Under the pieces are notes generated by a model, which saw only the letters and a list, made by a program, of their open reading frames with translations, did no database searches and was not told the DNA's origin. Made by a program: the position numbers and the translations under genes. From contig DF237311.1 in the NCBI GenBank assembly GCA_000708835.1, forward strand, positions 1-64,000: a DNA stretch of 64,000 nucleotides. The letters run 5' to 3'. Source of the stretch: Klebsormidium nitens. Taxonomy: Eukaryota; Plantae; Klebsormidiophyceae. Below are positions 34,167 through 56,957 of the stretch, in pieces (the stretch's first letter is position 1; every line of letters begins with the position of its first letter).

Positions 34167-34187
34167 ATGCGTTTCTTCGCTGGTGTG
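34167..34187 (+). pseudogene. 5' fragment (MRFFAGV) of the membrane-protein gene interrupted by the transposon
   Basis: ATG CGT TTC TTC GCT GGT GTG. The last codon is the TSD and rejoins GAG ACC GCG... at 56358 in frame. Confidence 0.6.
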
Positions 34188-34520
34188 CACAGGGAGGAAC
34201 ACCGGTTTGCCCGGTCTTCCTGCCCGGCCATCCCCGTCCCTTCTAGTTCTGCCCGGTGATCTGACCCCCTGCCCGGTCTACCGACTTCCCTGCCCGGTCA
34301 CAACACCGGGCAGCCAATCGACGGACGTCCTGCCCGGTCTCGCAAAATCACTGGGCAGGAAGAATGACCGGGCAACGATTCTCTACTACCGGGCAGCGCA
34401 TCACAAGGCAGCAACACGACCCGGGGCAGCCGACATCGCCGGGCAAGTGCGCCGGGCAGCATCTACAGCCGGGCAGCGCAGTCGGGGAAGAAAACCGGGC
34501 AGTGAGATACGACCGGGCAA
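34188..34520. repeat. Left TIR and subterminal TGCCCGG/CCGGGCA array
   Basis: By manual count, 6 TGCCCGG and 8 exact CCGGGCA copies with unique spacers; orientation switches near 34300-34340. Confidence 0.9.
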
Positions 34521-35729
34521 TTAGGTCGGAGAAAGAGGACAGTAGATATCTGCTGCTTTTGTTCCGTAGTTCATACAAGTACTGTACGATCATTCAATGC
34601 GTTCAGATAATCAAACTGTTCGCAATCATTGAATTAGAGTCCAAGACGTTCGGAGCCATTATAATTATGTTGCCGCATAGATATGCATGTAACATAATCT
34701 TTTTTGTCCATTTCGCAGGCGATTAAGCTTCGAACTTCACTCGTTCCAAAGTTGAAGTGTGGAATGAATATATTGCTGCATAGTTGTTCGCTGGACCCCT
34801 GCGCCATGGATCCTTCAAGTCTCGTACATGTGCAGCGCGAAATATGCGAAGATTGATCATGAGCCGATGCGATACTCGCTAATTCATATACAACCTGTGC
34901 TTGAATAGATGGATGAGGCCCATTCGGAGAGCAGAGGCGCAAATCCATGTATAACGATTGATTAATCAAAGGCGTTCCAACTTACATACGGTCGAACGAT
35001 AGCCCTCCTTTTGTTTTGAAAGTCGGTTCGAGCTCGACCGTTGGATGAAGAACGGACAACCCTGATTTCGTCGAAAAGCCCACAGATGTGTGAGGCCACG
35101 CTTCGGCACGTTTATAATAAATAATCGCCCCGAATTCTGCCAACAATGAGGGCGAGGACGAGATGCTGGCTACGCTAATTGCCAACCTTGCTTAGATGAT
35201 CTGAGAGCCGCGGAGCCCTCTGTTTTAATACGAGGCTTGGCGCGTTGATCGTCGGATCGTATACATCGACGATCCTGACTTCATCGGGACGCCCACAATC
35301 ATGCGAAGCCACATTCCGAGAATTTAAAAGGAATGTTCGCTTCACTGTTGTCATGACGCTGGGGCTATGGCGAAACTATATGCGCTTGGCGCCAAGAGCA
35401 GCTAGGCGCCAAGCGAGTCCAATGGGTTCGCCGAGCCCCCTTTTTTGAGAGGCGGTCCGAGCGCTAGGCGCCGACTGTTTGATGAAGAGATCAACGATTG
35501 ATGTTCCGTAATCAGCATCCCATAAACCAGCGATCCAGACGAATGCTCTTCGCAGGCATCATGCATATGCACCAGCAATCCTTCACGCTGCATGTCCAGA
35601 GGTGTTAATTCTGTTCTGATTCCCAGATTCGGAGCCTATAGAGTTGTACGTCCCATTCACAAGCTGTAGTGTAAAGTGGCCCCAAACAATCTTACTTCAC
35701 AAGCTCACCCCTGAAGCAGCTCATCCGAT

Positions 35730-35826
35730 TCCGCTGACCCGTCCGCTAACCCATCCGCTAACCCGTCCGCTAATGGGTCCGCTAACCCCCCGTCCGTAAA
35801 TCCCCGTCCGCTAACTCAGGTCCGCG
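35730..35826. repeat. Degenerate ~12-bp tandem repeat (CCGTCCGCTAAC)
   Basis: About 7 imperfect copies of TCCGCTAAC. Confidence 0.75.
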
Positions 35827-36216
35827 ATCACTAGAGTAATTGTCCTGAGTCACTCGTCCTCAAAGTTGCTGTTATCTGTAGCAAAAGGAGAGGGAGATCC
35901 GTAAGCATCAAATTCGCCCATGAGCGGCAGGTTCACGGAATGGTTGTTACTTTCTCTACGAAATGGTTGACACTTTCTCTTCAATCCTGTTTGTCCCCTG
36001 TTTGTCAAGCGGCAGACTGCGCCTGAACGAGTTCGTGACGGCGAAACTTAAGAATAAGTGCTGTTTCATGCGCTACCGTGAGCTCCTCAAGCGTTCCTTT
36101 CCGGGTGTCTGGCCAGCTTTAAAAAGTCGTCGCGCATCCGTCAGGTTTGGCTAGCCAGGGCGGTGTTTTGCTATCCTGGACTCAAAACCTTGTCAAATGG
36201 AGAGCTTGAGTAGTCA

Positions 36217-37605
36217 TCAGAAGTTATGAAACGGAAACTGCAGTTCGTGTTGACCTGTGGAAAAGCACAGGCACTGGACTCGCCTCCAGAGATTGTATAC
36301 CTCATAAGCCTGTGGCTGAAAAATCTGACCTCCTGATTCGTTGTACGCAGAGCGAAGTTCTCTGTGTCCACCAAGGCCGCTGAGAGTTTCTTCAAAAGCG
36401 GGCATATGTCGAGCGAGCCCGAAAGACACCGTCTTTAGAGCGAATTCGATCGAACTGAGTCGGGGTACGTATCTCAGAGGGCCAGACGCAAAAGTTTACC
36501 CTCAGAAGTAGCTTTGCAAATTCACGCGTCCTTTCGCGAGGTTAAGAGACGGTTCTTTGCGCGAGCTACCGAGTAGCTGCACACGGGTGACAGATTTCTG
36601 ACCCCGGCTGTTCAAATCTGTGGCACTGCATGAAACGTTTCTCTTGACGGCTCTTGTCAGTTCCTATAATGCGAAGGAACCTTTCTCACCTTCTGCCACC
36701 GAGTCCCATGAGCCGTCCGAGTCGCCCTCCGAGTCGCCGTCCGAGTTCGGTTGGCCGTACATCACCTATACACAAGGGGGAAACGGTCAGAGCTGGCTTT
36801 TTCTTCGTACTATTCTGTTCTGTGGTTACAGAGTATTGAACTAGCCAGACCCAAAAGATTGCTCACACTCAGCCCGAATGATCAGAGCTAAGCCTACTTA
36901 TGCGAGCTACCCAGAAGCTCTACACGCTCGATCAAGGGAGAGAAGCGCTGGAAGATCTTCGAATCTCTGCATCCGGCTGCTCAGAAGGGCTGAGAATAGG
37001 GGTGAATTGAAACAGGTCTCTCAACGCGTCTGGTTGCGGCAAAGTAATTGCATCATCACCTGGCCAGGCTCCGCGTCTGAGCTGTCGCCTGAGCTGTCGC
37101 CTGAGCTGTCGCCTGAGCTGGCGAAGTCGTTCCGGATTACCTGTACCCAAATCAGAAAACGAAAACGGTCAGAGAATCGAATCAGCAGGCGAAGGACCAG
37201 CTCGGTGTAGATATCATGTAAAAATACAATCGAATCTCAACCGCGCCAGCTACGCGCTCGTCAACGGAAGAACATTGTTGGATGGAAATTTAGCTGCTTA
37301 AAGCGGCTGCTAGTGGGTGCAATGAATGGGAATCCTGAATGCGCCTGGTTACGACTGGACCTCACAAGCGGACCTTATGAGTTTTTGAATGTCCTCACGT
37401 CTTCTTCGCCATGCGGATTGTAGTCCTCCTCCAGGCGCGGCCACGCCCGCGCGCTCCGGTTGCCCGGCCACACGTCATTCCTCTCTTCCATGTTGTCCGA
37501 GAAGGAGATTGCCCGCACGAACTCGTCCGGTCTCCAGGGCAGTGGCTCGCTTGTCGGCCGCGGCGGACCAACCTCGTCGGGCATGAGCATCAACGGCGGC
37601 TGGAC
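36217..37605 (-). CDS. Probable downstream exons of the third transposon gene (splice model unresolved)
   Basis: Coding-like segments (EVQPPLMLMPDEVGPP...EEDV; PNSDGDSEGDSDGSWD; HMPAFEETLSGLGGHRELRSAY...), some ending at GT donors. Confidence 0.3.
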
Positions 37606-38225
37606 CTCCTTGCACAGTGTTTGAGATAAATGCCTGTCCTTGATGTTTGCTCACGGAAGCGCAAGAAACACCGAAGTGGCGCTCTCCGAATAGAACGGAG
37701 AAGAAAGCGCGAGAGTCCTTTGTCTGAGCAGATTCTCCGGACCAGATTCTTCAGATTGTTTAGATCCGGTAGTATTCTTCTCACTCCGGTTATCGGTGTT
37801 CTCCAGACTCTTCAGATCAGATTCTTCTTCTCACAAGCACTGCAAACGGGCAGCACGGGAATCGCAGAAACCTCAGGTCTCGCTTGACTAGATTCCGGTT
37901 ACTTCGACCCGGCTGGTTTACCTAAATCTCGATTACTCCCGAGTATTAGAAGGAAAGGATGATGGAATCAAGTAGAATCAGAGAAGGCGAGGCCAACCTA
38001 CTGCCAATCGGCGGATTCATCTCAACAAGACAGACAGAGCTTGAAGGCTATTCTGGACAAAAACGTCTACCATCTTCTGGGTTAATCTAGGCTTCTAGCT
38101 GACAATTGATTTTTTTTTCAACTATTTCTGGAGATCCGAGCAGATTTTCAGAACGTTAACCACAGCAGTCGTATCTCGATAGTAGAGAAGCAACGCAAAC
38201 CGCTCAGAAAATATGTACAACTTAC

Positions 38226-38986
38226 AGGTCCATCTCCAGGCCCTGCCAGGCGAGCGCCTTCTTGCGGCTGTTGGCGAGCATCTTGCTGGTTGTGTGCCTC
38301 CTGCTGACTCTCCGCCCCGTCAGCTGCGTCTGCAGTACAGTCCTGGCCGTGACCGCGTGCCTGTTCTCCTGGATTACCGCTGCCCGGAACGCGGCGAAGT
38401 TGACGCTCTTCTCGGAAAAGAGATGCCTGCCGATCAGGCATTCCCAGTCAGATTCCAACGTTGCCTTGGTTGAGAGCTTTCCAAAGTCAAACAGCAAGTC
38501 ATCTTCCGGACGATCATCCGGGTCGAATTCGGGGTTTAGGTACGCCTTTCCGCAGTTAACCTCGTTCTGGCGGGCTGCAAAGTTAGCACGTGCCCCGCTC
38601 GCAAACCCAAAGGTCCACATGAAAAGAATGATTCCATCCCGCAGCTCCCAGTACCCGTCATCATTGCCGAGGCCCACTGCATTGTAGGCTGCCCAGAAAG
38701 CATCATCCATAGCCCTCCAGGCCTCAGCAGGCGAGAGGACCGTCCCCTCCTTCACCTCATCAAACACGATCCAGGCAAAGCCCTGAGGGTTGGCTGTCCA
38801 CCTGGCCATTGACTGTGCCCTAGTGCGCAGACCAAGGACGTAAGATTCCCAGTGCATGCGCCAACCCTCAGAGGCCACCACCAAGATCGCGAAGTTGGGG
38901 ACTTCAAGCATGCACTGGGGCCCATTGAAGCCCTGTTCAGCCAGAAAGCTCAGGCACTTATCCTGGAGAGACGATGGCTCAGACAT
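38226..38986 (-). CDS. Third transposon-borne gene, large exon (~254 codons), unknown function
   Basis: ATG-initiated, aromatic-rich, globular-looking ORF ending at a GTAAG donor (38225-38221). No motif recognised. Confidence 0.55.
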
Positions 38987-40250
38987 GGCGCAGCAGACTT
39001 CAAGAAGGAGCAGCTATGGCGTAACGAGAAAGTGGGGCGCAAAGCTTCCTCAGAAGGCGTTCGTTGCAGGGGCCCCGTTTCTGTTTGAGCGAAGCGGGAG
39101 ACTTTTCGAAGCTTCCATGCGCAATCGCGCAAGGAAAGCCGAAGCTTTGATCGGCCACTGGCAGTCACGCGTACGAAAACGGCAGTTGACGATCGAGCAA
39201 CGGAGGCATAGACGGCAATTGCGCAGCAGTTACACTACTGTAGGTTTTAGCACTGACAGGGAAGTCGACCATTGGACAATCCATATCGTACGTCCGAGAA
39301 AGTTAAGTCCTAGGCAGAACGTACGTCCGAGAAAGTTAAGGCCTAGAATGCTTCAGCTGCTGCAGCAGCACGCCTCACAGATCAGGGAGCGCCCTTTGTT
39401 TTGACTGCGCGCTTAGGCTCCAGCCGTATTCCAGACAGCCATATTCCAGACAGGACGTGCTCAGAAAAGATTGGCTAGAGAAAAGCAGGGCGCTCATGAG
39501 CTGATCAGGTTATTGCCAAAGTTGCGTCCCAGCTCTCAGACCGGCAGTCGCGCTTTGCGTAGATATTCGACGTGGGCGCCTTATTGAAACCCGAGACCGG
39601 TGACGGAAGGTTTCAAGATAGACAGACACAGCATCTGAGCAAACCACACTCCTGTCTTTTGACAAGAAAGTTTGGGACGAAGGGTGCGAACAAACCTCTT
39701 AAAAGGGAGAAGCAGCGGGGGCCTTTGAGTGCCCTCAGATGGGCGCTTTTGAGGAAGCAAGCAGACGGACGAAGGTCCGCGTGTCCAAAATTTCAAAGAA
39801 CGGCTCTCCTTTTGAGTCCAGTTTTTTGTTCATGAAACTGTGAGAAACTTCTCAACTTCTCAAATTAGAAAGGGGACAAGATCAGGCCAGAAATATATCT
39901 AAAGAATCCGGAAAGACGGGAAGAAGAACAAGTAGCTTCGCCCACGAACAATCAATCAATCAATCATTCTTTCAATCAGTCAGTCAATGCAAGCTTTGAT
40001 ACTTTGATGTAGCTGAAATCAACGGGATCAGGCTCTAGCAGTAAGCTGATGGGCGCTGGCCAGAGATTCTTGCTTAGTCTAGGCTTTGTTCAGTCTGACG
40101 TAAAGTCTGATCATTCACTCCAGCTGTATGTGGGTAGACCTGACCCTGCAGACATGTGTCTTAAACTGACCCTTATCGACCGTTTTCAAATGTCTGAATA
40201 AATTGCACTCACGTTTTTCTAAGGGAACCCATGGGTTCCCTTGGCCAGCC

Positions 40251-43200
40251 CTAGATCCGGATGCGTACGGGCGGCAGCGCCTTGAACGTGTAGATCTGGC
40301 CCCGCTGCCTGTCCTCCACCATCTTCACCGACTCCACGCGGTCTTTTATCTGGTTCCAGGTCACCGTCTTCAGCTCGTAGGCGCGTGCCTCCCCGTCACT
40401 CTCAGCGTCACTCTCCTCGTCTCTCTCGGCGTCGCTGTCGACGTCCATCTCTCCCTCGACTGGGTAGGGCGTCCAGTCTTCTTCCCCCCCGTCCGGTGCA
40501 GGTGGTCCGCATCTTTTCAGCCACTGGAGGGCTGCCTTCCTTCCCCCACCGGAGCTGACCTTCCGCACGATGGCGTACGCCAAGGACCAGCCCGGCCTCA
40601 CCGACTTGAGGACCCCGTACGGGACTCCGTAGCCCCACTGCCCTTCTACACCCTCTTTCCGGACGTCCGCGTCCTCTAACACCTCCACTCGGACGATGTC
40701 CCCGACCTGCGAGATTTGGGCGTCCGAAGGTGAGGCCGAGAATCTACAGTAGTAAATTGCTTGCAAAAAAAAAACGGGCCGACTTGACAGGAAGGCGAAA
40801 GGATTTTCGAAGAGCTTGTCTGCAGCAGGTGGTGGGCTCTGTGAGAATTCAAGGTGTTCTTTACGTAGTGCCAGTCTCTCAAGCTATCGCATAGCCTTAG
40901 TGTGCAATCAACACGCATCACTTCAAAGATTGGTTAAAAGGACCCCTTATGGAGAGGCTTGAACAACTTTCAGGGTTTTGCTTTCGGATTGCGGACGTTG
41001 CAGGAGCTCTTGTCGCACCGTCTTCATCGCGGCCGCACGCGAGGTTTTTGTCAAGGTTTCTGCGAGGTTTTTCTCGAGGTTTTGCGCGCGGCCGCGCCCG
41101 ACCGCTTAAGATGTTTTGTTTGCACAGCCGCGCGCGAGGCCTTTATTGGGGCCGCGCGCGAGGTTTTGCGCGCGGCCGCACCGACCAAAGGTTTGCGCGC
41201 GGCCACGCCCAAGGTATTGCTCGCGGCCGCGTCCGCGGTTTTGCGCGGCCGGGCGCGAGGTATTGCTCGCGGCCACGCGCGAGGTTTTGTGCGCGGCCGC
41301 GGGCGTGTCCGAAGCAAATATTCGCAAAACCAGAAGGTTGGGGGGACGTGAAGAATAGAATTTCGGCGCGTCGTGAATGATAATAGAGTGTGCCACTTGT
41401 CGCGTTTCCTCCAAGATAGGGTCTGCCGTTTTGCTGATGGCAGAGCCTATTCTGATGTCTTATGGTTTCTGGAAAAGAAGACCAAAGTCTCTCGAAGCCT
41501 CGGAGTCTGTAAACAAACTCAAGACTCCCAGAAATAATAGTCTGTGAACGCAGCTGAACGTCTCCCACGTACATTGAAAGTCTCCAAAAAAAGTTTGTAA
41601 AATCTTACCCGGGGTAAGACCGGCACCCACACGTCGTGCGCCTCGAACCCCAGCCCGCTCGGCGCCACCTCGATCACGTGACTCGCCCCTGTGCAGAGCG
41701 TCTCGCCGAGGGCGGGCACCGGGATGAAGTGCCTCCGCAAGTGGCAAGCCAGCCGGACGCGCTTCTGGCCTGGCTTCAGGGGCTCGAGCATGAGGCAGTT
41801 GTGCGGACTGCCACCCAGGGGAAGCCCCGTCTCCGCGTCGCGCTGGATGCGGAACCGCGAGTATTCCAAGAAGATCCGCCGGGGGCCGTTCTTGGGCTTC
41901 GCGGTGAAGAACGACTCCACCAGGACGTACTCCTCCGACTCGTCCGCAGCTTTCGGGGCCAGCACGGCGTGGTCGCCCGGAGCGAAGTTGTTCTCGCCGA
42001 GCTGTAGAGGGTGAGTGCATCGTGTGTGAGTCGCTGTAAGACTTTTCTGCGAGACGGTTACTTCTTACAGCCTCTGTCAATCATGCTTCATAGAGGCCTA
42101 CAGTCGCATGTTGCCCGTGATACTACCAATCGGGTCGATTGTCAGAAAGATTCGCACCATCTGTCGAAGAATATCGATTCAATTTGAAACTTGGTGGATT
42201 CCAGAAACTTAGAAACACGCGCTTTCGATCTTGGGGAAAAGACTGTTCCAAACGGGTCGTTCAAGGGCGCGAGGAAAGCCCTCAGCACGTACTTTCGACC
42301 GCAGGACTTCGTTCAGACTGCAGTATATCTTTTGGCAGGACCCATATAAGGGGGGGAGGTCGCTTATAACCATGCTTGGGCTGAGGGAAGGCTTCTCGGA
42401 AACCCGTCTCACCGGAAAGTAAAATCAGTTTTTCTTGGCTAAAAGCCGTGGATGCGTTGAGTGGGGTCCATAAAGTCTTTTAAAATATCTCGGGCACGCC
42501 AGACGCCCGACCGGTTAGGGAGCTGTGGCGTTAAGTGTTGACCAGACCGGTACTAGTGAGCCAGGGATTGAATGAGACTGAATTGGTGTGAATGCACTCT
42601 CTCAGGTCTGAATCCGAAAGAAATTTCACAATCCGCTCTCGCAAGAAGGTTAGCCGGATTGCATGAAACGATGTTGGAGACGTAACCGTGCCTTTCAAAG
42701 CGGCTGATGGCAGAAACGGAAAGTCGTCTGATTCCAGAGCTTGCCTGCTTTCTCGCTTCGGACACGTCCTTGCTCCTGAACGGCCTGTTGAGCAATTCAA
42801 AGTCTCCGTCAATTAGCTGAAAGACTGTTTAAAAATGGCAAGTTCTTTGCGGCGCAAAACCTGAATACTCCTTGCCCGCCGGACCGTACGACGATCCACT
42901 CGGTAGTACCGCTCCCCCGTCCTCGCGGCCGCCCGCGCCTCTCCGTCAAAGATGCGCTCGACGGCGACGCGCTGCACGTTCTCCAGTCGCAGGCGCGTCC
43001 GCGTTTCCCACTTTTCCGGCAACTGCCCGACCGCCACACCCTCCTCGCGCACGCGCGCGAGTATCTGCTCGTCCGACGCGCGCGCATCGCGCGGCCGCTC
43101 GAGCCCCAGCTGCTCCACGTAGGTCGCGGCTTCTGTCTGCGACGCGGCGAAGACGACCCCATCCGACTCGCGCGCGCGCGCGCGCGCCCACACGTCGTCG

Positions 43201-46200
43201 CCCGCTGACCGTCCGGCGGCACGGAGTCGCTCTTCGCGTCGTTTTCGGAGCAGCCACGCAATCCTCACGCAGAAAAGCGCCCGCTTGTGGAGCGTACTCT
43301 CGACCTCCTTGCAGTTGTGCTTGGTGTTGACCAGCTGCTTGATCTTGCGTTCTTGCGCGTAACACCAGTACGCGTCGGGCGGGCCGTGCATGCGCACGTT
43401 TGTGGGCATGTGCAGGCAGGTCTCGTGATCGAGCGGGCGCAGCTTGGGCAGCGCGTACTCCTCCGCGCGGACCAGCTTCGCCTTGAGCAGCTGCTGGAAC
43501 ACGCACGCAAGCTTGCTCGTCCACCCGCCCCGCGTGCCGACCAAGTACACGAGCGTGTGGATGCACGCCACCAGCTGCACGATCGCGTACCCCTCCGGGT
43601 CCTCCGTCGCGACGTCGGCGAACGCGGTGGCGAAGCAGACCGTCGCCGCCTTCATGTGCTCCTCCGCCTTCCACCACCCCAGCGGCCGCTTCTCCGGGTC
43701 TGCCGGCCACCGTCCGTCGCCGAGCTTCCGGGTGGGTCTGATGCCCGCCAGCCGCTTGCCGAAATCCTCTTTATCGGCCCGGGGAGGTTCTAAACTGAAC
43801 GTCGTGTCGCCCTGCTTTGAAGTGACCCCGTTCAGAAAGTCTTGTAACAGGTGCTTCACCATGTTTTCGGGGCCACAGTGCAGGAAGTCGCTGCATATGT
43901 CCAGCAACAGGTGCAGACCGTACGCCGCCCACAGGATCAATAGCATGCAGAACCCATTGAAGCCCGTCCGCTTGTTGATCCGATTCCGCTCCGCCTTTGA
44001 CCTCGCCCCTAGGTGCTCGAGCATTGCGGCCGCGACATCTTCCATCGTCTTCTCTTCGCACCCGTCGCGCGCGAGCCGCCGGCCGTCTTGATAAACCAGC
44101 CTCCCGTCGTTGTAGCGCGTAGCCTGGTGCTTGCAGCTCCGCGAAACCCAGTATCCCCCCAGCTTGAACTTCAACATATCCGCCAGGGCCGGAAGGTCTG
44201 AAAACACGCTCGAGACTATCATCCGGATCCTAACCGGGCCGTTCTGAGGGGGGAGTTTGGGGCTAATCTCGTTGGGAGGGAGGGCGTAGTTGACCAGGAT
44301 GCCCTCCTTGAAGAGGCGCAGGGCGTCCAGCACGAATGCGAGCATGAAGGGGTCGTAACAGTCGGGGCCGGCGACCATCTTCGTCTTTTGGGGCAACATT
44401 AACGGCCACAGCCAGTCCTCCGTCCCCCTGTGCAGATTGCGTTTGGAGACCGTCATTGGAAACACGTCCAGGATGCAGCTGGACTTGCTCGACGTGGTTG
44501 CCGTCGGGAACCCGTCCTGATGCAGCCCCAGCTTCAAGTTCCTCGGGTCCCCCCGTCTCGCCAGGTCTGACAGCGTCGCCGTCATCTCCGTTTTGCAGAT
44601 GGGGCACAGCGCTTCGAAGCGCTGCCGTTCGGCGACCCACATCTGGAGGGTCGGCCGGGTGAACCAGGGGGGGCTGAACGTCTTGGCGCAATGCACTTTC
44701 CGGCTTCTGCAGCACTCCGGGCACGTCAGCGGAAGAAGGAAGCTGGACTCGGGGTCGAAGAACGCCGCGTCGTCTCGCCACCGCTCCCCGTCCCAGACTT
44801 CCGACTGCGGCTCGAAAACCCCCCCCTTCGGTTGCCCCAGCCAATGTTCCCGCTGTCCCCAAGCCCCCCGGACCGTCGCGTCTTTGCAGCCTTCCAGCGT
44901 GGTGAGCTTCGCGCGCGCGTGCAGCTCTGGCGATATGTACGGCAGCTCGTACGCGTCCCGCCGCCGGAAGCCGCAGTCCGGGCACTTCTCTTGGTGCACG
45001 GGGCAGTCGCGCCACGCTGGCCTGCGCGGCCCCTCTTCGCATTCGGGACAGGGAGTCGTTCTGCAGTCTTCGGCGCTCGGGGCGAAGAGGTGCCAGTGGC
45101 CCTTGTTCTCTCCTGTTTTGGGGCCCGGGTGCCAGCGCCAGTTCTGTGCTTCGCCCAGCTCACGTGACGACCTTGCCAGGTAGGCAGTTACCTGCACAAG
45201 AATGTTTCGAAACTGTAAGTCTACGTACCGGAAGTCATACCATCGGAAGGCCCGACTTTTCCATGCGATCCCGCGTGAAGGACAAGTTTTTTGGAAGCAT
45301 AATCTTTTCGTGCACCAATGTTCCGCTGTTCTGCCGTTCCTTTTGTCTGCCTGCTCGAAAGAAGAACGGAACAGCAGAAAATCGGAACAACGGTGCTTGC
45401 GTGCGCACCACCGCTTCCATGTGCACCCCTCCTCGTGAAAAACTCAAGATCTTTCAGTTGAACGTTTTCAAAATCCAACTCTGCTTTCAAGCCGTCTTAA
45501 TCAATTTTGAAAAAGAGCCAATCTCCATTCAGACATTGCGCACACTTCTTTTGAGATGCAAACAACTTGGTAAATCAAAGACTATGATTGTCTCCTTGAT
45601 CAATCTCACGAGTTGACGTCTGGTCAGAAAAGTTGATTGGACGGAGATGTCTCCGAGCACAGAATCTACAGAATATTGCTATGCTTCCCTCTCCTTCAGC
45701 CGTGCTTTACGATTCAACAACGATCAGATCCCTCAACTTCAACTGCCCGGTTTTGAAAGACGGGGAAAGCTTATAGAGTTAGCGGCTGAGTTACTCGCGA
45801 ATAACTTACCCACCATGGTGCTTATTGGCCAACTATGTGGTGCTTGTTGGCCAACTCTCTAAGCTTCCCCTTCGATCGAGGGGACATTGCGGACTCGACT
45901 GAGTTGTTGACTAACTTTCTAAGCTTCCACCTCCACACATTACTACCAGGGGAAGCTTAGAAGTTAGTCAATAACTTAGTGTTTGAAAAGCCAGCAGGTT
46001 GCAAGCTGAGAATTGTAATGTTTTTGGTCAATTACGTCGCCTTTGGTGGTCAAGTGCAGGGCCCTTGTCAAGCCCCGCGGGACAAGGGTCCGGCCGGGGC
46101 TCATCGTCGTGGGGTTGGATTTACCGGTGAATGTTACCCCCCAACCCCCTTGCTGGAATGAAATTCGGAGAAGGCTCTGCAAATTGTCTTATAAAATTGT

Positions 46201-47226
46201 CTAATTGTCTTATAGAACTGTCTAATTGGCTAATCGTCAAATATTTGTCTAATTGCACAGCATTTCAATTTCTAATTAGGAACGAAGATGCTGCACGGTT
46301 CTCTGAATTCAGATCCTGCATCCTGACGTACCTAAATGGCAGCAGAAAGGGAGATTAATTCCATCTGACGGAGGTCTCCGCAAACTAGAAGAGAAGAATC
46401 TGACCAGGGCCAGGTTTGTTCAAAGGCCCTCTCGAAGTTAACAGATTGTACTGGACAGCTAGATCGATACATATTCATCTGGCCAGCAGCTTCACAGGAG
46501 ATTTGGTCAGTTCGGACAGCCTACCTGAGCATGCGATTGAGGAAGAGCCAGCCTCGTGATGGTCTCTTTCCACCGAGGGTCGATTGCCGCAGCGAAGGAG
46601 TCGCTCGCGCCGATGCACGTCTTGAGCAGCTTGTCCATGACTGCGTTGCTGAGAGCACTCTGCTCTCCAATCCTCTGCAGGTCGACGATCGCATCGAGCA
46701 GCTTCTCCTCAAGAGCAGACCCTGGACCACCCGCTTGCCCTGGATCTTCCCCCTGGCCATGCTCGCGGTCATCGTCTACAGCAGGAGCCTCAAAGTCCGG
46801 TAACTGGCCAAACCAGCTGCCAATCCCTGCCCTTTCTGTTCCGTTTCTCCCACCCTCTCTTCGCGCATGCGCTGCTTCAGCTCGTGTCCCTGGCTCTGCA
46901 CCATCTAGCCCCCCTTCCCCCTCAAATTCCACGTTACCAGCCAGAAGATTGGCCTGGTTTGCTTCAGAGCGCCCTGCTGGAACTCGAAGCTCTGTCTCTG
47001 CGTTTGGGATTTCTCTCTCCACTAAGGCTCCTGCTGCAGATGTTCGAGCATGTGAACTGACAGCAGCTGCAGGTGCTCTCTCTTTCTCAAGGTGCTTTCT
47101 CCTGGTGCGTTCGTTGACGTACCGTCCCCCATCCTTGTTCTGTTTGCACAGCGTACATGTGCACCAGATTCTTCCCTCCGAGTCGAATTCCGCTTCGAAA
47201 TCCACGGGAACCTGTTTCAGACGCAT
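40251..47226 (-). CDS. EnSpm/CACTA transposase (TnpD-like), ~1,293 aa, with C-terminal BAH-like modules
   Basis: Phase-0 exons 47226-46525, 45191-42861, 42001-41609, 40706-40251. N-terminal CxCxxC transposase-associated motif (WCTCTLC...RTRRKH). LGLHQDGF, FSDLPA, DFLH (CMC DxxH signature) and HMPTNVRMHGPPDAYWCYAQER (DUF4218-like region with the catalytic E). Confidence 0.88.
41027..41305. repeat. CG-rich ~24-bp degenerate repeat array in transposase intron 3
   Basis: About 9-10 units of GAGGT(T/A)TTGC(G/T)CGCGGCC(G/A)C. Confidence 0.8.
45762..45980. repeat. Two related inverted repeats in transposase intron 1
   Basis: 45898-45928 pairs imperfectly with 45951-45980. 45762-45780 pairs with 45853-45870. 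Shared CTAAGCTTCC core. Confidence 0.7.
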
Positions 47227-48124
47227 GCTTACTTTCGAACTATACTGCCGGCATACTGCAAGCGCCTCACTGATTACATGAAGATTCTCATGATCGCGAG
47301 CAATTCTCAGTGACACCTACAGCTTGAGGACGTCGACTCCATCTCTTCACATTCTTCGATCTGTTTCCCCTCTGCAGGAATCTAGCTCGATCTCTGCTAG
47401 CATCACAATCGCTTTTGCGACTGCACATGCGGTCTCTCACAAAGCAGCAAATGAGCTCTAGATAGTCTCCGAGGGTGCTCAAGCTCATCATGTCGATCAG
47501 CCTCGAGGCTGATCAAAGAGCTCTTTGAACGTACAAAGTCAACCATTTCCTTCATCTTGCCATCTTCACTCTGCAGCAAAACACAAGGAGCACCAGCCGG
47601 GGTTCGACGCGAGCATCGAAGCTAAGATACAGGTATGCGCAAGTACTTCGCGCCCGTCGATGTTATAACTATCTGCAAAGAATCCCGCCAAATTTGAGGC
47701 AGATTCGCGCGTACGGCTCTGATTTCCAGGCTACAGGTTGACTGTCAAGAACGATCGTCCGATATCTTTGGAAACCTGGTTTTGACACGGAGTTACGCAC
47801 TTCGGTTCGATAGGAGATCGAGGTAGATGACCTGACGGAAATGATGTATATCGTCGAACTTCGTGTCAAAGCGAGCGCACGAAATCCCTGGTGTTCGAAC
47901 ATGCAGACGTCGCGCGCCTAACGTTAGGTTAACCCTGTTACAGTCAGCGCACAAGCAAAGAACGATGCTGCAGCAAGGAGGCAGCACTAGCAGCAGAGAC
48001 TTAGATCAGCAGTAGTAGCAGCAGCAAAAGCCGCTGCAGGTCCGTCTGAGAAGGGGCCAAAGCATCTACAGATCGAAGTCGTTCTGGTTTTTTTTGCATT
48101 TTGATCAGCGCTCCATAGCTTCGG

Positions 48125-51100
48125 ATGGCGCAGGCTGACGCGAACGAGATGAATGACAGCAGCGCTAACGTGAGCGATATGACCTGCGAGGAGTTTGCGC
48201 AAGAGGTTGAAAAGAGATTGAAGAGCGATAGATACACGAAATTCATCATCGAGGAAGAGATCAGCGGAGAAGCCTTCCAGGCTGGAGGCGACCCTCTCAT
48301 TCAAAGCTTCACGGATCTAGACAGTGAAAAAAAGATAAAGCAGGGTCACATCGTAATCTTGCAGAAGTACAGACAGTCAAGCTTTGGTACGCAGGGATCC
48401 ACTGATGAGAGAGTCAGCGGTGAAGCTGACAAGGGTCCTGCAGATTGCCTGAGCAGGGAGCTGGTGGCTGTGGAAGAGGGGGGTGCTTCTGAGGGGGCAA
48501 AAGAGAAAGGAACGGAGAAGAGGAAGGCAGCGCAAGCGATGAATGAACCTGCGACTGCACAAAACCTGTTCGCGACACTGTGGCAGAGCCATAAGTGGAA
48601 GCACGTCATGGGAGGGAATGGGGTCCGGAGGATGCAGGCAATGCATGCAGACCTTAGTAACCGGATGCACGTGGATCTTGGCCTGGAAGACTATGCCCAG
48701 GGCGGGAGCAAGGAGAACGAGAATCTGCCAGATGAGCAGCAGGAGCGGCTGGCGTCGATCCACTTGAAGAAGAACGGCAAGGACCGAGAATGGAGGGACC
48801 GGATCTACGACGCCATCATGGGGGAGGGAGAGAGCGGTGGAATGTTGACGACTCTGGACGGCAAGGTCTTCAGGTGGCCCAAGGGTAAGCTTGAAAGCTT
48901 TTAACTCTCGCAGAAAGTACACTTTTTTTCGAGCCAAACTTTCTTCTCTGTGCAGTACAGCTCAGTACGTAACAGACTCTTGAACTGGAAGGTATCATAC
49001 AGATCCATCGCTGATATCGATAATCCTGGGACATTAGACGCTGTCAGCGTGATCTTTCTCAATCTTGGAAATTATACGATGATATCCTGCTAGCTGTTTT
49101 GTGCTTTTCATCTTCGGATGCATCTGGCCTGCGCATATATATGGACCGTGGAGATTGTCAGTCATTCTTGATTGCAGATTGCTAAGACGAAAAGCACTGT
49201 TTATTGTGACAGCGTTATCGAGAATTATCACCTTCGTCCTGCTCGGTGCATCTGCAACTTCGTACGCATCCAAGGGCGTCGAATTTTATCAGACGTACAC
49301 GAACGCCTCTTGCTGGATTCGTGACTTCACTGGCTTTGATGTGCAGCCGCTCCAACAGATTTGTCGGGAATTGTTCCGGTCATGAACTGGATTTGACTCA
49401 CGACTGTAGACTCTGCGAATCCCAGCATCAGATTCGTTCAGCTCAAAGAAATCGGTCTCCAGCAAATCGCGGAGGATTGCCAAGGGCATCATTCTAATTG
49501 CGCTGCATGCATTTCAGGATCGATCACGTACATATATGCATACTTTCACCTGCAGGGACCTTCAACAGGACGTTTAATTCCATCCTGGACACGATGAGGA
49601 AGAAGCTCCTGAAGGCAGAGAAGTACAAACGCAACCAGCAGAAGAAACTACAGAAGTACCATGCCAACAAGAAGCTCAAGGTAGGAGAGCCAATGTTCTT
49701 TGGACGGCTGCTTTGGATGAAAATCGACAGGCACATTGATATCTTGTTCTTCTGTGCCCCGCCTCGCGTGAATCTCTTGGCATGTCCGAAACACAGGGTC
49801 GGCCTTTAGAAACAGAGGTTAGTGCTAGTGTCGGTCAGCTTTCCGCAGGCTGTTTCTGCACGCTTGGGGCGGCGCTCTCTTCACATCTCAGTTGCGTGCC
49901 TCTGGACTCCCTACGTCTCAAGGCCAGAATCTTCACCCCCTTGTTCCAATCTCAGAATACTCTCAAACTTAAGGGGAACGAGTTCTGAGATTCAAATCCC
50001 CCGTCGTCGATGGATCTGATCAGTGCGGCATGATTCCTAAAGCTTCCTTTCCGAAAAGGCTGGTCAAATATGTTCGAAGGTGATGTAAATCGCACGTCAA
50101 AGTGAGAAACTTTGCCAATTCGTTTCCTCTCCCCCGAGCGTTGAAGTTCTCTGCTCTATCTTCAATTCACCTCTGAAATAACTTGTCGGCTTGATCACAT
50201 GCCGTTGTTTGAGGACCGATTCGCACCCGCTGGCTGTTTCGAGTTTGCAGGGACGTTCCGAAGCTCGCGCTGCGCTCCCGCAAGGAAGCGCCGACGGGTC
50301 ACACGGCGAAGCTCCCGCGCAGGTAGGCCCGAAAACGCTGTGTGCGTATACGTTTCTGCGCATACGTTTCGTGTCTCCTAAAAAGTGTGAATACACGAAG
50401 TTTTGAAAACCTCTCGGGACTGTCCGCACAATCCGCTGCACAATCCGCCGCAGAACCTGGGGGTTATTCACATCACGTGACTTGCCAGCGGTAAGGAAAG
50501 CATTCAGCGGATTGGTCTCAGCCGTGCGAGGTGGAAGCAGCCAGAAAGCCTCTCCCGTTTGGAACAGTCTCTGTGTCTCTTACACGTTCACGGCTGCGTG
50601 ATAGGTTCCGGAACCGACGCCCGACGCAGCCGACGATTACGTGGGCCCCGAACAGCAGCTCAACAGACAGGCACGTATTCAATTTTGAGAAAGCCGCAAC
50701 GCGCGGAATTTGCCCCGCAGAGAGAGGAAGACTCCGATGGGCTCTCAGTCTGATCCCTTTCGCCTCGGTGCAACGTCGTACTGGAAGCGTCTAAGAAAGC
50801 AGTGTTATTTCAAGGCCTCTTGCTCGAATATAGTGTTGACTCTGCAGATCTGAGCTTTGTCGGCATTGCAATATTACGCGAGTGATTCTGAAGCCTACTC
50901 GTGTGCAGGAGAGCGGTACGCCGTCCAGCGACCCCCCCCGCAGCCCTCGAGGCGAGCCGCGCGCGTCAAATGCGAACCCGGTGAGTGCGGAAGACGGTGA
51001 ATTTGTGCCCGTTCCTGGTTTCGCTTTATCAGCAACGCAGGATAGGGAAGACTCGGATCTCCTGTCAGTTGGACTTCTCAAAACTTTCTTCTCGACGCAG

Positions 51101-54100
51101 CGTTGTACCAGAAGCCCTTGCGAATGATCTTAAATTCTAAGACCCTCTAGCTGTCCGCATCGAAGATTACACTCTTTGCAGACTTTACTTTCGCATCTGA
51201 GGCCTCTGGCCTGTACGCTGGGCCGCAATACTGGTGTGAAGCCGCAATACTGGTCTGAAGCCGCTATGTGTGCAGGCGAAGGAGACTGGTGCGGACGGCC
51301 CCCCTGGCATCTTGGACGACCCTGAGGAGGCGCGCACTGCCATCGCAGCTGTGAGCGAGAATGGACTTTCTGCCCAGTACTTTCCGACCAGTACTTCTGC
51401 CCCCGACGCATCGAAACAAAAATTTGTTCACCGCATCAGATAACACGAGATTCACAAAGAGTATTTATAGGGTCTTGCCGTTGCGCACCCCTCGTCTTGT
51501 GTCGGGTTGAATACACGCTTTTGACCGCCTCCACTGCAGGAGAACCAGCCCGCTGACCACCCGACGCCTGCTCCCACGAGCGCCACGAAGAAGGCCCCTG
51601 TCAGCGACGCGTCCAAACAGCGGTAAGCGCTGCACTCGTTCTGCCAATTGCGCACGCTCTGTTTGATATCTCCCTCGTAGAATCTGCTAATGGCTCATGA
51701 GGGTCTGCGAGAAATCTTACCGATGATACTATATCCGGTCCTTTTCGAAGCCAGACTTTCGCCTTCTTTCCACTCCAGGTTTTTTCAGGCCAGACTGCGC
51801 CGCCGATTGATTGCCCGAGCTGGTTCCTTATTGATAGTTGCGGTTCCTTGCGCTCTTTGTGGTTTTTCGGAAGTTGCAAGATACACAGAACGACAGGCGT
51901 TTGCCTAGCGACTCCTAAGCCCTTTGAAACGGATGGCTGCTCTTTGACCTCTTTCATCTTGTTCTCGCGACAGCCAAAGCCGAAGTCGGGCTGCGCGATC
52001 CAGGGGTGCGCGTCCGCGGCCAAGATGCAAGATACGGAGTTCTGCAGGGACTGCTCTCAACCCGTGCACAAGGAATGCGCGCGCGTGCAGCTGAAGAAGC
52101 TATACGGAGTGCCGCGGTACGACGGGGACGTGCTGTACTGCAGCGAACATATCGCCAAATTCAACTTCCGGAAGGTCAGTTGTTCTTTAACGGGCGGAAG
52201 GTGCGCTCTCGATCTGCCTGCATTCGCTTCAAGGGTCCGTGGCGAAGTTGCCTGCTCTCCTCTTTGATAGCTCCAGAGGTTCTCATCGAGTCAACTCTGA
52301 TTAGAGGTCGGGGGAAGATCTTTAATCGAACACCCTGAAGTCTCTGAAACCTCGAGAGAGTCAGTTCTACCCTATCCTGACCCATCCAGATTTAGCTCAG
52401 AGACAAGCACGCAGCAGCCTGCCTAAGTTTCATGTGAGGGCGCGCGGCGAGTAATGTCCTGTTTTCAGTGAGAGCGTATTTACACCGGCTCAGTCTCTGG
52501 CTCACCAGCTGTTTTTACTTCCTAACACCGTATCTACCTTATTAACCCGTCAGTGAAGGTTCCGGACATGTCAGCAGAATTTGCGGATATAGGACCTACC
52601 GTTCTGAGCTTTTCTTGACAAGGGTTTGAATGGCCTGCCCAGACCCGCTTCAAGGCGACCCGTTCTCTTGTATCTAAAACGGCGCCAAATAATCTAGCTC
52701 GGCCAGTCACAGCGTGCCACGTGTCACCGCTTAACACTCTCGAGTGCCCTTCCCGTGAGTCACAGAGCTAGATTTCACGGAGATGCCAAGCCGCGCGATA
52801 ATTAAGTGTAATTTTGGTCCGAGTCACGTCTCTCTAGCGACAAATCTTTAGCACTACACACATACTTTACTTCCTTTTGCAGGGGCTCGGCGGCAAGTGC
52901 GCGCTCCCGAGTTGCGACAAGGCGGGCAACATGACCCAGCACTGCTGCAAGACCTGCCAGGCGCCGATGCACAACCTTTGCTACCAGAATTTCCTACGCC
53001 AGGAGTATGGGAAGGAGGACTTCGACGGCGGCGCCTACTTCTGCAAGGTCCACGCAGGTGCTTTGGGCTTGAAGAAGGTAAACGCGCGACACTGCTCTGT
53101 TGCTCTTAACAGGATCCCCTTGTTTGTGTCCGCTCGCATCGGGGTTTTAGAGCGCGCGGCGCGCGCGCGTTGCATAGCAGTTGTCGGGATTTTAATCTAG
53201 GGTGCGCGCGCGACAGGAGAAAGAATAGACTTCAGTGGGCGCGCGCGCCCGGCCTCGAATAAGCGAATTTTATCCAAGCTCTGCTTCGGTGCGATTGTAC
53301 CTCTTTTGTGATCTGTGCGTCTAAAATCCGCCGTTGGAAGTGCGCCAGAAAACACCCTAAAGCCATCTCTTGTCGATGTTCTGGTGTTCACTGAACTTTC
53401 CCAGCCCCCGGGTCGTTTTCGTATTGCTTCTTCTTGGCCCCTTCTTGCTGTGTGGTCGGGTGTATAATCATTCGTGACTTCACGATCAGCAGAGAATCTT
53501 CTGAATCGATCTCGCTTCCGTCTTTCCAGCTGACGACAGCATCCACGTCATCAACGGGAGTATGCGCGGAGACGCTCCTGGGCCTGTCGGAGCAGGAGGT
53601 TGATTTGCCGGTGAAGAAGCGGTCTGGGGAAAGCGGGGACGCCGGCGAGGAGCAGCAGAAGAAGCGGAAGGGGGGTGGGGACAGCATGAAGCAGGACAAG
53701 AAGAAGCGCAAAACTGGCCCGGAAGCGGAGAAGACGGACGGGGATGACGGGAAGGACAGCAAGACAGAGGAGGGGGGAAAGTCAGGGAAGGACGGAAAGG
53801 GGGGGAAAGGCGACAAACCCAGGAAGGAGCTCACGTCAGCGGAGCCAGAAACCGACCCACCCACGGAGCCGGTCGAGGACTCTGCGGCGCCGCGGCAGAG
53901 CATGCGCAAGGCGGTAAAGTATACGCTCATATGGAATGCCAGCCATGTGGTTCCGGACAAGTCAGTGGGGAAGAAGGGGGAGAAGCGGGCAAACGGGGGC
54001 GAAAAGGCCAAAAAGGGCAAGAAGAAGCGGAAGACGGCGGCCCCGGAGGACAGCGAAGATGAGATGAGCCTCGAGGGAAGCGCCGCGGAGTCCTCTGAGG

Positions 54101-55020
54101 AGGAGTCAGACGCCGAGGCGCAGACGGACCTGCCAAAGAACGGCGACTTCGAGGACCGGGACGAGAAGCTCTCGCCGGCGATGCGAAACAAGTATGAGAT
54201 GATCTGCATGAAGGGCCTGGATGTGACCCAGTCTTACAAGGTAAGAAAAGCATCTTATTTGAGGAGCCGCAACTCGACAACGGCCGGGTTGAATTGCTTT
54301 CACTGCTTTCAAATGCCACGCCAGCGGTCACCATCTGCGAAGAGCTTGGCGGTACATTATCATTACCATTAGTACCGCACATATGTTTTCAGCGGGCTGT
54401 CGTCCGCGCTTGTATCGCTTGTTAGGGGGATAACTGAGTCAAACGGAGGTTACTGACCAGATTGTGGTGGGGCTAGGTCGGGGTTAGGGCTGGTGTTAGC
54501 GGAGGCAGGGTTTTGCTTTTCTGTGTCCCTGATTATCGAGGTTTGAGAGCAAATAAAGTGGCTTACCGTCTGGTCGACAACTCTGCCGGACGATTGTCGT
54601 TCAGAGAAGTTCCTCAGAGACGTGCATTCGTGTGTTCTTATGATCCCAACCATTTCCTCGCTCGGCACACCAGTGCACGCGACACTCACAGTCTCTTCCA
54701 GTCGGCATGCTTTGATTCTCCGTTGCGCCCATTCTTGCCATAAACACCTGAATCTCGAGGGTTCAAGAAAGATTGCTGTTTGCTGACGTTTACTTTTGTA
54801 TTCGCAGCTGAGCACGGATACCCTCGTTAGCGCGATCAAGAAGCTCCAGATTCCGCACGTGTCCAAGAATCGCGAGCTGCCTGATCTGCCCCTCGAGTAC
54901 CTGCTCAAGCTGCTGGCGGAGGGGCTCATCGACAAAAAGAAGATCGTGATCAAGGGCAACAGGTGGAGGGAGGACGCGACAGAGCTGCGCAAGTCGGACA
55001 TCAGTCGACCTTTTTGTTAA
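48125..55020 (+). CDS. Transposon accessory protein: SAM-like N-terminus, tandem PHD/ePHD-like zinc fingers, K/E/D-rich region
   Basis: First exon from ATG 48125 (MTCEEFAQEVEKRL...YTKFIIEEEISGEAF...IKQGHIVILQK, SAM-like). Phase-0 exons 51974-52174 and 52883-53077 each encode C-x4-C-x10/11-C-x2-C-x4-H-x2-C-x20-C-x2-H. Further exons at 53530-54240 and 54808-55020. Small middle exons (49.5-51.6 kb) are only partly resolved. Confidence 0.72.
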
Positions 55021-55175
55021 GACTCCGGGTGAGTCACTTATACGAAGAAGGGTCCTCACTCTAGCGTGTGAGAACGGGAAAACCTGGTATTCAGAATTGA
55101 TTTGAAGACATTCCTGAAATGAGACCAGACCAGCAGTGTCGATCGACGAAGTTCCCGCGAAAACAGTCGTGTCAG

Positions 55176-55293
55176 CGTAGCGCGCGCGCGGAGTTTGTAC
55201 AGGCCGTCCCGCGCGCGCGGGGTTTCTGTCGGCGTCCCGCGCGCGCGGGGTTTGTGTCGGCGTCGCGCGCGCGCTCGCGCCAGCCGGGGTTTT
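55176..55293. repeat. CG-rich 28-bp tandem repeat downstream of the accessory gene
   Basis: CGTCCCGCGCGCGCGGGGTTT(C/G)TGTCGG at 55205-55232 and 55233-55260, plus flanking partial copies. Confidence 0.8.
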
Positions 55294-56018: not shown

Positions 56019-56354
56019 CCCTGCCCGCTCATGTACGATGAGTTTGCCCGGTCTAATTGCCCAGCCACTTGCCCGCACATGTGAATGCGTTCCCCGGCGT
56101 TGCTGCCCTCCCTTGAGCGCAAGCTGCCCGGTTGTACTGCCCGCTCTTGAGCGCGAGCTGCCCGTTTGTGCTGCCCGGTTTTCGTTCGCGCTGCACGGAG
56201 ATACGGGTAACCCCTGCCCGCTCGTGCTGCCCGGCCACGATCACCGGTCAAACGGCCCGCTGCCCGGATTTCGGCCGATGACCGGGCAGGAGGCCGGGGA
56301 ACGCGCTGCCCGGTGAGCTGCCCGTTAACGGGCAAACCGGTGTTCCTCCCTGTG
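56019..56354. repeat. Right subterminal TGCCCG array and TIR
   Basis: About 15 (C/T)TGCCC(G/A/T) copies, ending in the inverted TIR. Confidence 0.9.
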
Positions 56355-56957
56355 GTGGAGACCGCGTTGAGCTCTTGCTATAAACTGGTGCCTGTCAAGC
56401 TTTCCCTTGGGATAAATGTCGAGGATCTTAATTACGCAATGGTGCTCGCAGCTATTCCAATGGTGGGGATACCCGCCCTTTGCTTTGCTTACGTCGCGCT
56501 CGATGACCTTCTCTTCAAAGCCCCGCTGCCCGACCCTGGCAGCCTCAACGCCTTTCTCCAATCAAGCGGCCAGAACGTAACGCTCAGCCTCTGTACCATC
56601 AGGGACGCGTTTCAGGTCTATCTCGGTTTCTCAGACAGCTGCGACCAGGTTTTGGAGTCTCGCTATCCAGAAGCTGGCGCCTCCTTCGTGGAAATAAGGA
56701 AATACACCAAAAGACAGGCTTACAGCCATGGCTGGGAGCTAAGTGTTATCCTTTGTTTTGCTGGCATAATCTCATGCTACTCCTGGGTGCTTGCTTTCGG
56801 AGGCCTGCTTTACTACTTAGGGGGAACCGTACGCCTGCTTTGCTGTCAGCGACCTCAGGCCAAAGTGCACGATGTCGAGATGCAGGACGCTGCACTTTTA
56901 GATGATGACGACGGTAGTGACGGACTTGGTAGTGGGTCAGATCTGGAAGATTCTTGA
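56355..56957 (+). pseudogene. 3' part of the interrupted membrane-protein gene (paralog 1, single LPDP domain)
   Basis: Open frame with TM-LPDPGSLNAF...CTIRDAFQVYLGFSDSC-TM, homologous to 58365 and 62515. The reconstructed empty site gives 206 aa. Confidence 0.75.

Follow-up and report, generated by a model that had tools for sequence, protein, structure and literature searches.

A proposed second gene, encoding SAM and PHD-like finger domains, in a Klebsormidium CACTA/EnSpm-type transposon family

The window analyzed here is a 64,000-nt stretch of Klebsormidium nitens DNA (GenBank assembly GCA_000708835.1, contig DF237311.1, positions 1 to 64,000 of the forward strand), in which a plus-strand gene at 48125-55020 lies head to head with a transposase inside a CACTA/EnSpm-type transposon. 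This partner gene, KFL_003620090, has 10 exons and encodes an 827-aa protein (GAQ87577.1) whose record reads "hypothetical protein KFL_003620090 [Klebsormidium nitens]". We propose that a Klebsormidium CACTA/EnSpm-type transposon family conserves it as its second gene ('ORF2') and that its product is a nuclear accessory factor of transposition; to this explanation as a whole we assign a probability of about 0.6. The narrower statement, that the partner is a functional accessory protein encoded by the element, appears highly probable.

The element that holds the partner and the transposase spans 34188-56354 (22,167 bp). Its ends are a pair of 26-bp terminal inverted repeats (TIRs) that match perfectly and begin with CACAG, in keeping with the CAC(T/A)(A/G) start of CACTA/EnSpm ends; the left TIR (34188-34213, plus strand) begins CACAGGGAGGAAC and the right TIR (56329-56354, minus strand) is identical to it. 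A GTG target-site duplication flanks them, at 34185-34187 on the left and 56355-56357 on the right. These ends lie further out than an inverted-repeat search over 38-58 kb could reach, and that search found no termini. The 8-mer CCGGGCAG forms subterminal arrays of 10 sites in both orientations on the left (34220-34502) and six sites on the right (56124-56313), so that 16 of the 21 copies in the window, against an expectation of 2.4, fall in these two clusters. The transposase is encoded on the minus strand by an N-terminal exon at 46507-47226, which holds a CxC...C motif, and a core exon at 42813-45197 with a 794-aa open frame. Its sole Pfam match was a weak one to DUF4218 (E 0.038, 14.3 bits versus a cut-off of 27), its paralogues had no Pfam match, and a profile search of Protein Data Bank (PDB) sequences with the transposase alignment found nothing. 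With the transposase match this weak, we assigned the element to the CACTA superfamily because of its termini, its 3-bp duplication and its subterminal arrays. An earlier sequence-only reading of this DNA had taken the partner to be transposon-encoded, and its position between the TIRs and duplicated target sites agrees; a host gene at a syntenic site was rejected on the same ground. Other open frames are present within 34500-42800, for example at 38222-38986 (minus strand) and 38856-39404 (plus strand), together with the transposase 3′ exons.

The partner is kept with the transposase at every further locus of the family that was examined. Three further loci were reached via partner homologues, one in K. 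nitens (L001) and two in a single Joint Genome Institute (JGI) metagenome (L002 and L003), and four (L004-L007) via transposase homologues alone, which makes the latter the less biased test. A partner homologue, in one case truncated, lies divergently upstream of the transposase in all seven, including 4/4 of those fetched by transposase alone. In L001-L003 the transposase N-terminal exon and core are on the opposite strand, upstream of the partner, and homologous N-terminal exons precede the transposase core in each of L001-L007. Identity of the transposase core to that of the window is 72-82% in L001, L002, L004 and L007 and 46-55% in L003, L005 and L006; retention thus persists where transposase identity falls to 46% and partner identity to 25-40%. 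The truncated partner (K. nitens KFL_004030030, 318 aa; L007:7578-8906) ends after exon 2 beside an open transposase core, and no fingers or C-terminal domain were found within 7.5 kb of it.

The layout of the pair is retained as well. In the window, 899 bp separate the predicted transposase ATG at 47226 (minus strand) from the partner ATG at 48125, close to the roughly 900 bp estimated from the sequence earlier, and the head-to-head arrangement noted in that reading recurs with a spacer of 0.6-1.3 kb in 7/8 loci. The spacer between the predicted start codons (47227-48124, 898 bp) is a candidate shared promoter region. When spacers from five loci were aligned they proved poorly conserved, with short shared blocks only, and a shared bidirectional promoter is no more than plausible.

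The ends of the element are also recognizable at other loci. TIRs related to those of the window occur in L001, L002, L004 and L007. In L001 they carry a TAA/TAA duplication and enclose the partner-transposase pair within ~16.7 kb; in L002 they lie 17.2 kb apart with the pair inside, and the flanking triplets differ (TCG at 1067-1069 versus TGA at 18304-18306). Motif arrays flank the pair on both sides in L005 (L005:1941-2124 and 19274-19552), and a further array of a divergent subfamily was located at L003:18554-18723. The subterminal 8-mer itself changes with the subfamily, being CCGGGCAG, CCGGGCAA or CCGGGGAA.

Comparison with L002 suggests, on rough grounds, that the partner is under purifying selection. 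Rough Nei-Gojobori estimates of dN/dS, to be read for direction only, were 0.19 for the SAM domain, 0.28 for the mid domain, 0.36 for finger A, 0.24 for finger B and 0.58 for the last exon, beside 0.21 for the transposase. Exon 1 was also used for an exhaustive HMMER search of 1.84 billion representatives. The search returned eight proteins, all of them N-terminal parts or full copies of the partner family, and every match with a fetched context adjoins a transposase. Searches with other queries added little: one for homologues of the whole protein returned only itself, low-complexity words having flooded the candidates, one with residues 385-525 returned only an open reading frame (ORF) fragment of L002, and a metagenome scan with the N-terminal alignment gave no match.

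These observations bear on the alternative that the partner is passenger cargo, a host chromatin gene captured once and carried along with no part in transposition. Large CACTA elements do capture host fragments, SAM and PHD domains are common in host chromatin proteins, and the element has further unexplained ORFs between 34.5 and 40.2 kb. Against this, position and orientation beside the transposase are fixed in 8/8 loci, across subfamilies whose transposases are 46-55% identical; the exon-intron structure is conserved across loci; and all domains are kept with dN/dS below 1. Because the partner is retained family-wide, because of these dN/dS values and because the exon 1 search matched the partner family only, we consider a functionless captured passenger quite improbable.

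The structure of the gene was established by mapping a database record onto the window. Exon 1, used as the query, retrieved an 827-aa record (P0001, identical with GAQ87577.1) with 253/253 residues identical, and exon coordinates were taken from the mapping of this record with GT/AG borders. The four large exons predicted from the sequence alone agree exactly with the mapping. The gene has 10 exons instead of about five, with five small ones (49556-51599) lying between exon 1 and the finger exons. Exon 1 (48125-48884) encodes the SAM domain, a variable linker and, from about residue 156 on, the start of a conserved helical domain, which ends in exon 2 (49556-49680, residues 254-295), an exon conserved in L001, L002 and L007. 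Exons 3 to 6 (50251-50322, 50909-50980, 51276-51350 and 51540-51599) encode linker. The two PHD-like C4HC2H fingers occupy one exon each, finger A exon 7 (51974-52174, 201 nt) and finger B exon 8 (52883-53077, 195 nt), both in phase 0-0 with AG/GT borders. Exon 9 (53530-54240) corresponds to the long K/E/D-rich segment resembling a nuclear localization signal (NLS) that had been seen in the sequence; its 237 residues, also K/E/D/G-rich by description, include 37 K, 10 R, 21 D and 29 E and carry three KKRK-type NLS-like motifs. It is modeled as disordered, with a predicted local distance difference test score (pLDDT) below 50, and its last ~60 residues are conserved. Exon 10 (54808-55020) encodes a conserved C-terminal domain of ~65 aa, which has no fold match, and the stop codon. 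All 10 exons are on the plus strand. A K. nitens paralogue, KFL_004010030 (P0003, 815 aa), likewise annotated as hypothetical, is 45% identical to P0001 and has the same collinear architecture. CG-rich palindromes were noted in intron 8 at 53150-53260, and GC-rich tandem arrays repeating every 24 and 28 nt at 41119-41305 and 55169-55274, the second ~150 bp past the partner stop codon.

The partner gene is expressed, and at least one of its splices is used. Contigs from two public runs bearing the same species label match the window with 100% identity at 48470-48722, 51979-52175, 52890-53077 and from 54029 onward; they are confined to partner exons, and no intronic contigs were found. The contig that ends at 53077 runs on with CTGACGAC, the eight bases that open exon 9 at 53530. 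Since it crosses 53077^53530, it demonstrates the splice between exons 8 and 9 and with it the RNA origin of the contig. The SAM exon and the finger exons are joined in the database gene model, and we accept this join because of that model and because the paralogue KFL_004010030 has the same collinear architecture.

The N-terminus had been judged SAM-like by its helical pattern, and a structure model together with fold searches supports the compact five-helix fold of a SAM domain. An AlphaFold2 (AF2) model computed for residues 1-300 from an alignment of eight sequences places the predicted domain at residues 15-88 (~48167-48388) with pLDDT ~90. All top Foldseek rows for this N-terminal model were SAM domains (probability 0.97-1.0, TM by target 0.70-0.78). 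In a VIA alignment against 48,161 PDB representatives the first 40 rows were SAM/PNT domains, with Z up to 9.6 and a root-mean-square deviation (rmsd) of 1.9-2.8 Å over 67-72 residues, and the top neighbors were L3MBTL3, DGK-delta, SAMD1, PHC3, Scm/Sfmbt and Shank3. The polymerizing SAMs of Polyhomeotic/PHC3, Scm, L3MBTL3 and SAMD1 share this fold at Z 9.0-9.6, with a sequence identity of 9-20%; neither Pfam SAM_1 nor SAM_2 matched even at E up to 10. No Pfam scan, whether of single exons, of P0001 or of its paralogues, gave a match above the curated cut-offs.

The two remaining conserved regions have no known relatives in the databases searched. The mid domain (residues 156-299) is helical with a hairpin and has pLDDT 70-92; ESM Atlas and fold searches with residues 145-300 gave no convincing match, the region having been modeled within residues 1-300 rather than alone, and we do not claim a new fold. 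The C-terminal ~65 residues are conserved in all subfamilies and poorly modeled, and they matched nothing in Pfam or the PDB, also when a profile of the C-terminal alignment was used. Their order of helix, helix and basic hairpin (54808-55017, residues 758-827) may recall a winged helix, at low model confidence and with no database match.

Exon and ORF translations confirm that exons 7 and 8, picked out earlier as adjacent and similar in size, each encode C-x4-C-x10/11-C-x2-C-x4-H-x2-C-x20-C-x2-H. Fingers A and B are 30% identical (tblastn E ~5e-7 within the window), and when seven fingers from four loci were aligned, the eight Cys/His ligands, one Pro and one Gly proved invariant throughout. 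The pattern departs from that of PHD at two points: the last ligand is His for Cys and the first pair is spaced x4 for x2. As in PHD, and unlike RING, where His is the fourth ligand, His is the fifth, and ligands 3 and 4 are two Cys spaced by x2, which is not the RING order (C3-H-C4 / C3-H2-C3) with its C-x(1-3)-H spacing. Foldseek with the finger models, whose pLDDT is 70-88, placed tandem PHD or PZP domains in all of the first 11 rows (MLL3 and MLL4 PHD2/3, DPF3, MOZ, Ehd3, AF10 and PHF14), with E of only 0.007-0.14. When finger B was realigned, the best fits were the second PHDs of the BRPF1 and JADE1 PZP domains, PHF7 and the ARID5 PHD (Z 4.0-4.3, rmsd 2.0-2.3 Å); the single best VIA match was the second PHD of the BRPF1 PZP domain at Z 4.3, with the ARID5 PHD at Z 4.0. 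Taken more widely, the best neighbors of finger B comprise PHF7 and the second PHDs of BRPF1, JADE1, AF10 and PHF14 (Z 3.8-4.3, rmsd 2.0-2.8 Å over 44-55 residues), which share with it the terminal C-x2-H, a helix start of the form H-x2-C-A/Y and an aromatic residue immediately preceding the seventh ligand.

The description of the fingers as resembling extended PHDs (ePHDs) therefore holds in part. Only the terminal C-x2-H and the fold neighborhood resemble an ePHD. The strict sense of the term fails, since a true ePHD is preceded by a zinc knuckle and carries further ligands, for a third zinc, whereas each finger here has eight conserved ligands and no knuckle; zf-HC5HC2H models gave no match, Pfam PHD scores stay below the cut-off, and by fold alone PHDs and RINGs tie. 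Profile and phmmer searches of PDB sequences with finger A and with the finger alignment returned chance-level hits or none. A FYVE identity was rejected, as there is no basic R(R/K)HHCR-type motif, and the ligand order is not of FYVE type either. We prefer PHD to RING because the ligand order is invariant, because His is the fifth ligand and because of the x2/x4/x2 spacing; "PHD-like C4HC2H cross-brace finger" is the defensible name.

If the fingers were instead RING-type E3 modules, the partner could ubiquitinate or SUMOylate a host factor. The best PHD matches do exceed the Listerin, HRD1 and gp78 RINGs by no more than 1 Z unit, and finger B has a weak Pfam zf-RING-like match (E 0.017). The invariant order C-C-C-C-H-C-C-H, with spacings of 4, 10-11, 2, 4, 2, 20 and 2 and His fifth, is not that of a RING, and Foldseek ranks nothing but tandem PHD or PZP domains in its top rows. 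Together these make the E3 explanation the most improbable of those we considered.

The number of fingers differs within the family. Loci of the window subfamily (the window itself, L001, L002 and L004) have two finger exons, and those of the divergent subfamilies have one (L003:12940-13116, L005:6250-6405 and L006:5784-5939), which is closer to finger B. Because the divergent subfamilies hold a single B-like finger, finger A appears to have arisen by tandem duplication of a phase-0 exon, with finger B looking like the ancestral copy.

These features fit a model of how the partner may work. The protein, spliced from 10 exons and transcribed away from the transposase, would act in the nucleus as an accessory factor of transposition. 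Its fingers, its C-terminal domain or both would attach it to element ends or chromatin, its SAM domain would self-associate, and the self-associated protein would bring the CCGGGCAG-rich subterminal arrays together for the transposase, as TnpA does in maize En/Spm. Nuclear location, self-association, the targets of the fingers and an effect on transposition or silencing are in each case what we infer. TnpA, which is made from the transcription unit of the transposase by alternative splicing, binds subterminal repeats and brings the ends together. Like the partner, it is the second, non-catalytic protein of a CACTA-type element with short subterminal repeat arrays, and repeat binding and end joining are the role that we would expect the two to share. 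The partner differs from TnpA in being a separate, divergently transcribed gene, in having SAM and PHD-like finger domains that are not part of the TnpA domain set, and in lacking sequence similarity to it.

That end binding and bridging of the TnpA kind is the main job of the partner we suggest tentatively, at less than even odds. Of the roles considered it receives most weight because the arrays are dense and built on a single motif, because the motif shifts between subfamilies, and because piggyBac provides a precedent for a cross-brace finger. The cross-brace finger of the piggyBac transposase, its cysteine-rich domain (CRD), binds specific short repeats in the ends of its own transposon (PMC5861402). 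This domain is PHD-like and is a plausible model for the partner fingers and the CCGGGCAG arrays, although it resides within the transposase itself and has no detectable sequence relationship to the partner.

The main alternative, which we consider unlikely, would be the role of a chromatin reader, in which the fingers read histone H3 tails and the SAM domain forms a polymer on element chromatin, with the effect either of counteracting silencing, as VANC does, or of steering the transposase, as RAG2 does. The ligand order and spacing of the fingers are of PHD type, and their structural neighbors include histone-binding PHDs (ARID5, the double PHDs of DPF3 and MOZ, and PZP domains); Pfam PHD scores below the cut-off point the other way, and the finger model reaches a pLDDT of only 70-88. 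The best single match also cuts against histone reading, in that the second PHD of BRPF1-type PZP domains binds DNA rather than histone tails. The closest SAM neighbors, L3MBTL3, SAMD1, PHC3 and Scm, are chromatin SAMs, which favors this role. The PHD finger of RAG2 steers RAG1 to permissive chromatin, and RAG2 and the RAG2-like protein of ProtoRAG belong, as the partner does, to a two-gene cut-and-paste unit in which a DDE transposase has a partner with a PHD-type finger. RAG2 has a Kelch propeller, one canonical PHD and no SAM domain, its gene orientation is different and there is no sequence similarity, so that the parallel is one of analogy only. VANC, encoded by the Mutator-like VANDAL elements of Arabidopsis, sets a precedent for a transposon-encoded, non-transposase protein with anti-silencing activity (PMC5735166). 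Both VANC and the partner may act on non-coding repeats of their own element; VANC belongs to another superfamily, and it has neither domains nor sequence similarity in common with the partner.

More ambitiously, the partner could be a transposon-encoded, polymerizing chromatin protein, its SAM polymer forming on the repeat arrays and its fingers reading or masking histone tails, so as to create a private compartment that shields the element or licenses the transposase. We hold this to be clearly unlikely. If true, such a compartment would represent a Polycomb-style combination of SAM domain and reader in a parasite, and a CACTA counterpart of the division of labor between RAG1 and RAG2.

Several points weigh against our proposal of an accessory factor of transposition. 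Pfam scans of P0001 and its paralogues revealed no similarity to TnpA (Pfam Transposase_24), to VANC or to any other named family. The two fingers reach 17.6 bits (finger A, E 0.0039) and 16.3 bits against the PHD model (PF00628), whose gathering cut-off is 24, and an unbiased VIA search gave PHDs at Z 4.0 and RINGs at Z 3.6, a tie by fold. A single finger suffices in the divergent subfamilies, and the tandem pair is therefore dispensable. The five-locus spacer alignment contains no strongly conserved block and no clear common promoter element. Among the public-run contigs no RNA molecule joins exon 1, with the SAM domain, to the finger exons, the contigs themselves being short and presumed to be RNA. 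For the selection estimates, dS is near saturation, which leaves dN/dS as a rough guide to direction. Finally, all relatives were drawn from K. nitens, a single metagenome sample and a handful of short contigs, so the family as seen here is narrow.

Two-gene organization is known from several DNA transposons, among them En/Spm with TnpA and TnpD, Harbinger, VANDAL and ProtoRAG, but there are few such accessory proteins, and most have no relationship with the others. Our literature searches turned up no report of a CACTA element that carries a SAM/PHD partner gene. Should the partner lack a role of the kind proposed, the gain would be limited to a better annotation of two "hypothetical proteins" and their paralogues. 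As the evidence stands, a streptophyte alga distantly related to land plants hosts a whole CACTA lineage whose partner gene combines SAM and PHD-like finger modules of the kind found in host chromatin proteins. The apparent duplication of the finger exon in one subfamily and the motif variants of the subfamilies offer a natural co-variation test against candidate DNA-binding regions. Were the partner to bind the element ends or read chromatin, it would provide a simple system in which to study the targeting of a transposase or its protection from silencing and, beside RAG2, a second example of a PHD-bearing transposase partner.

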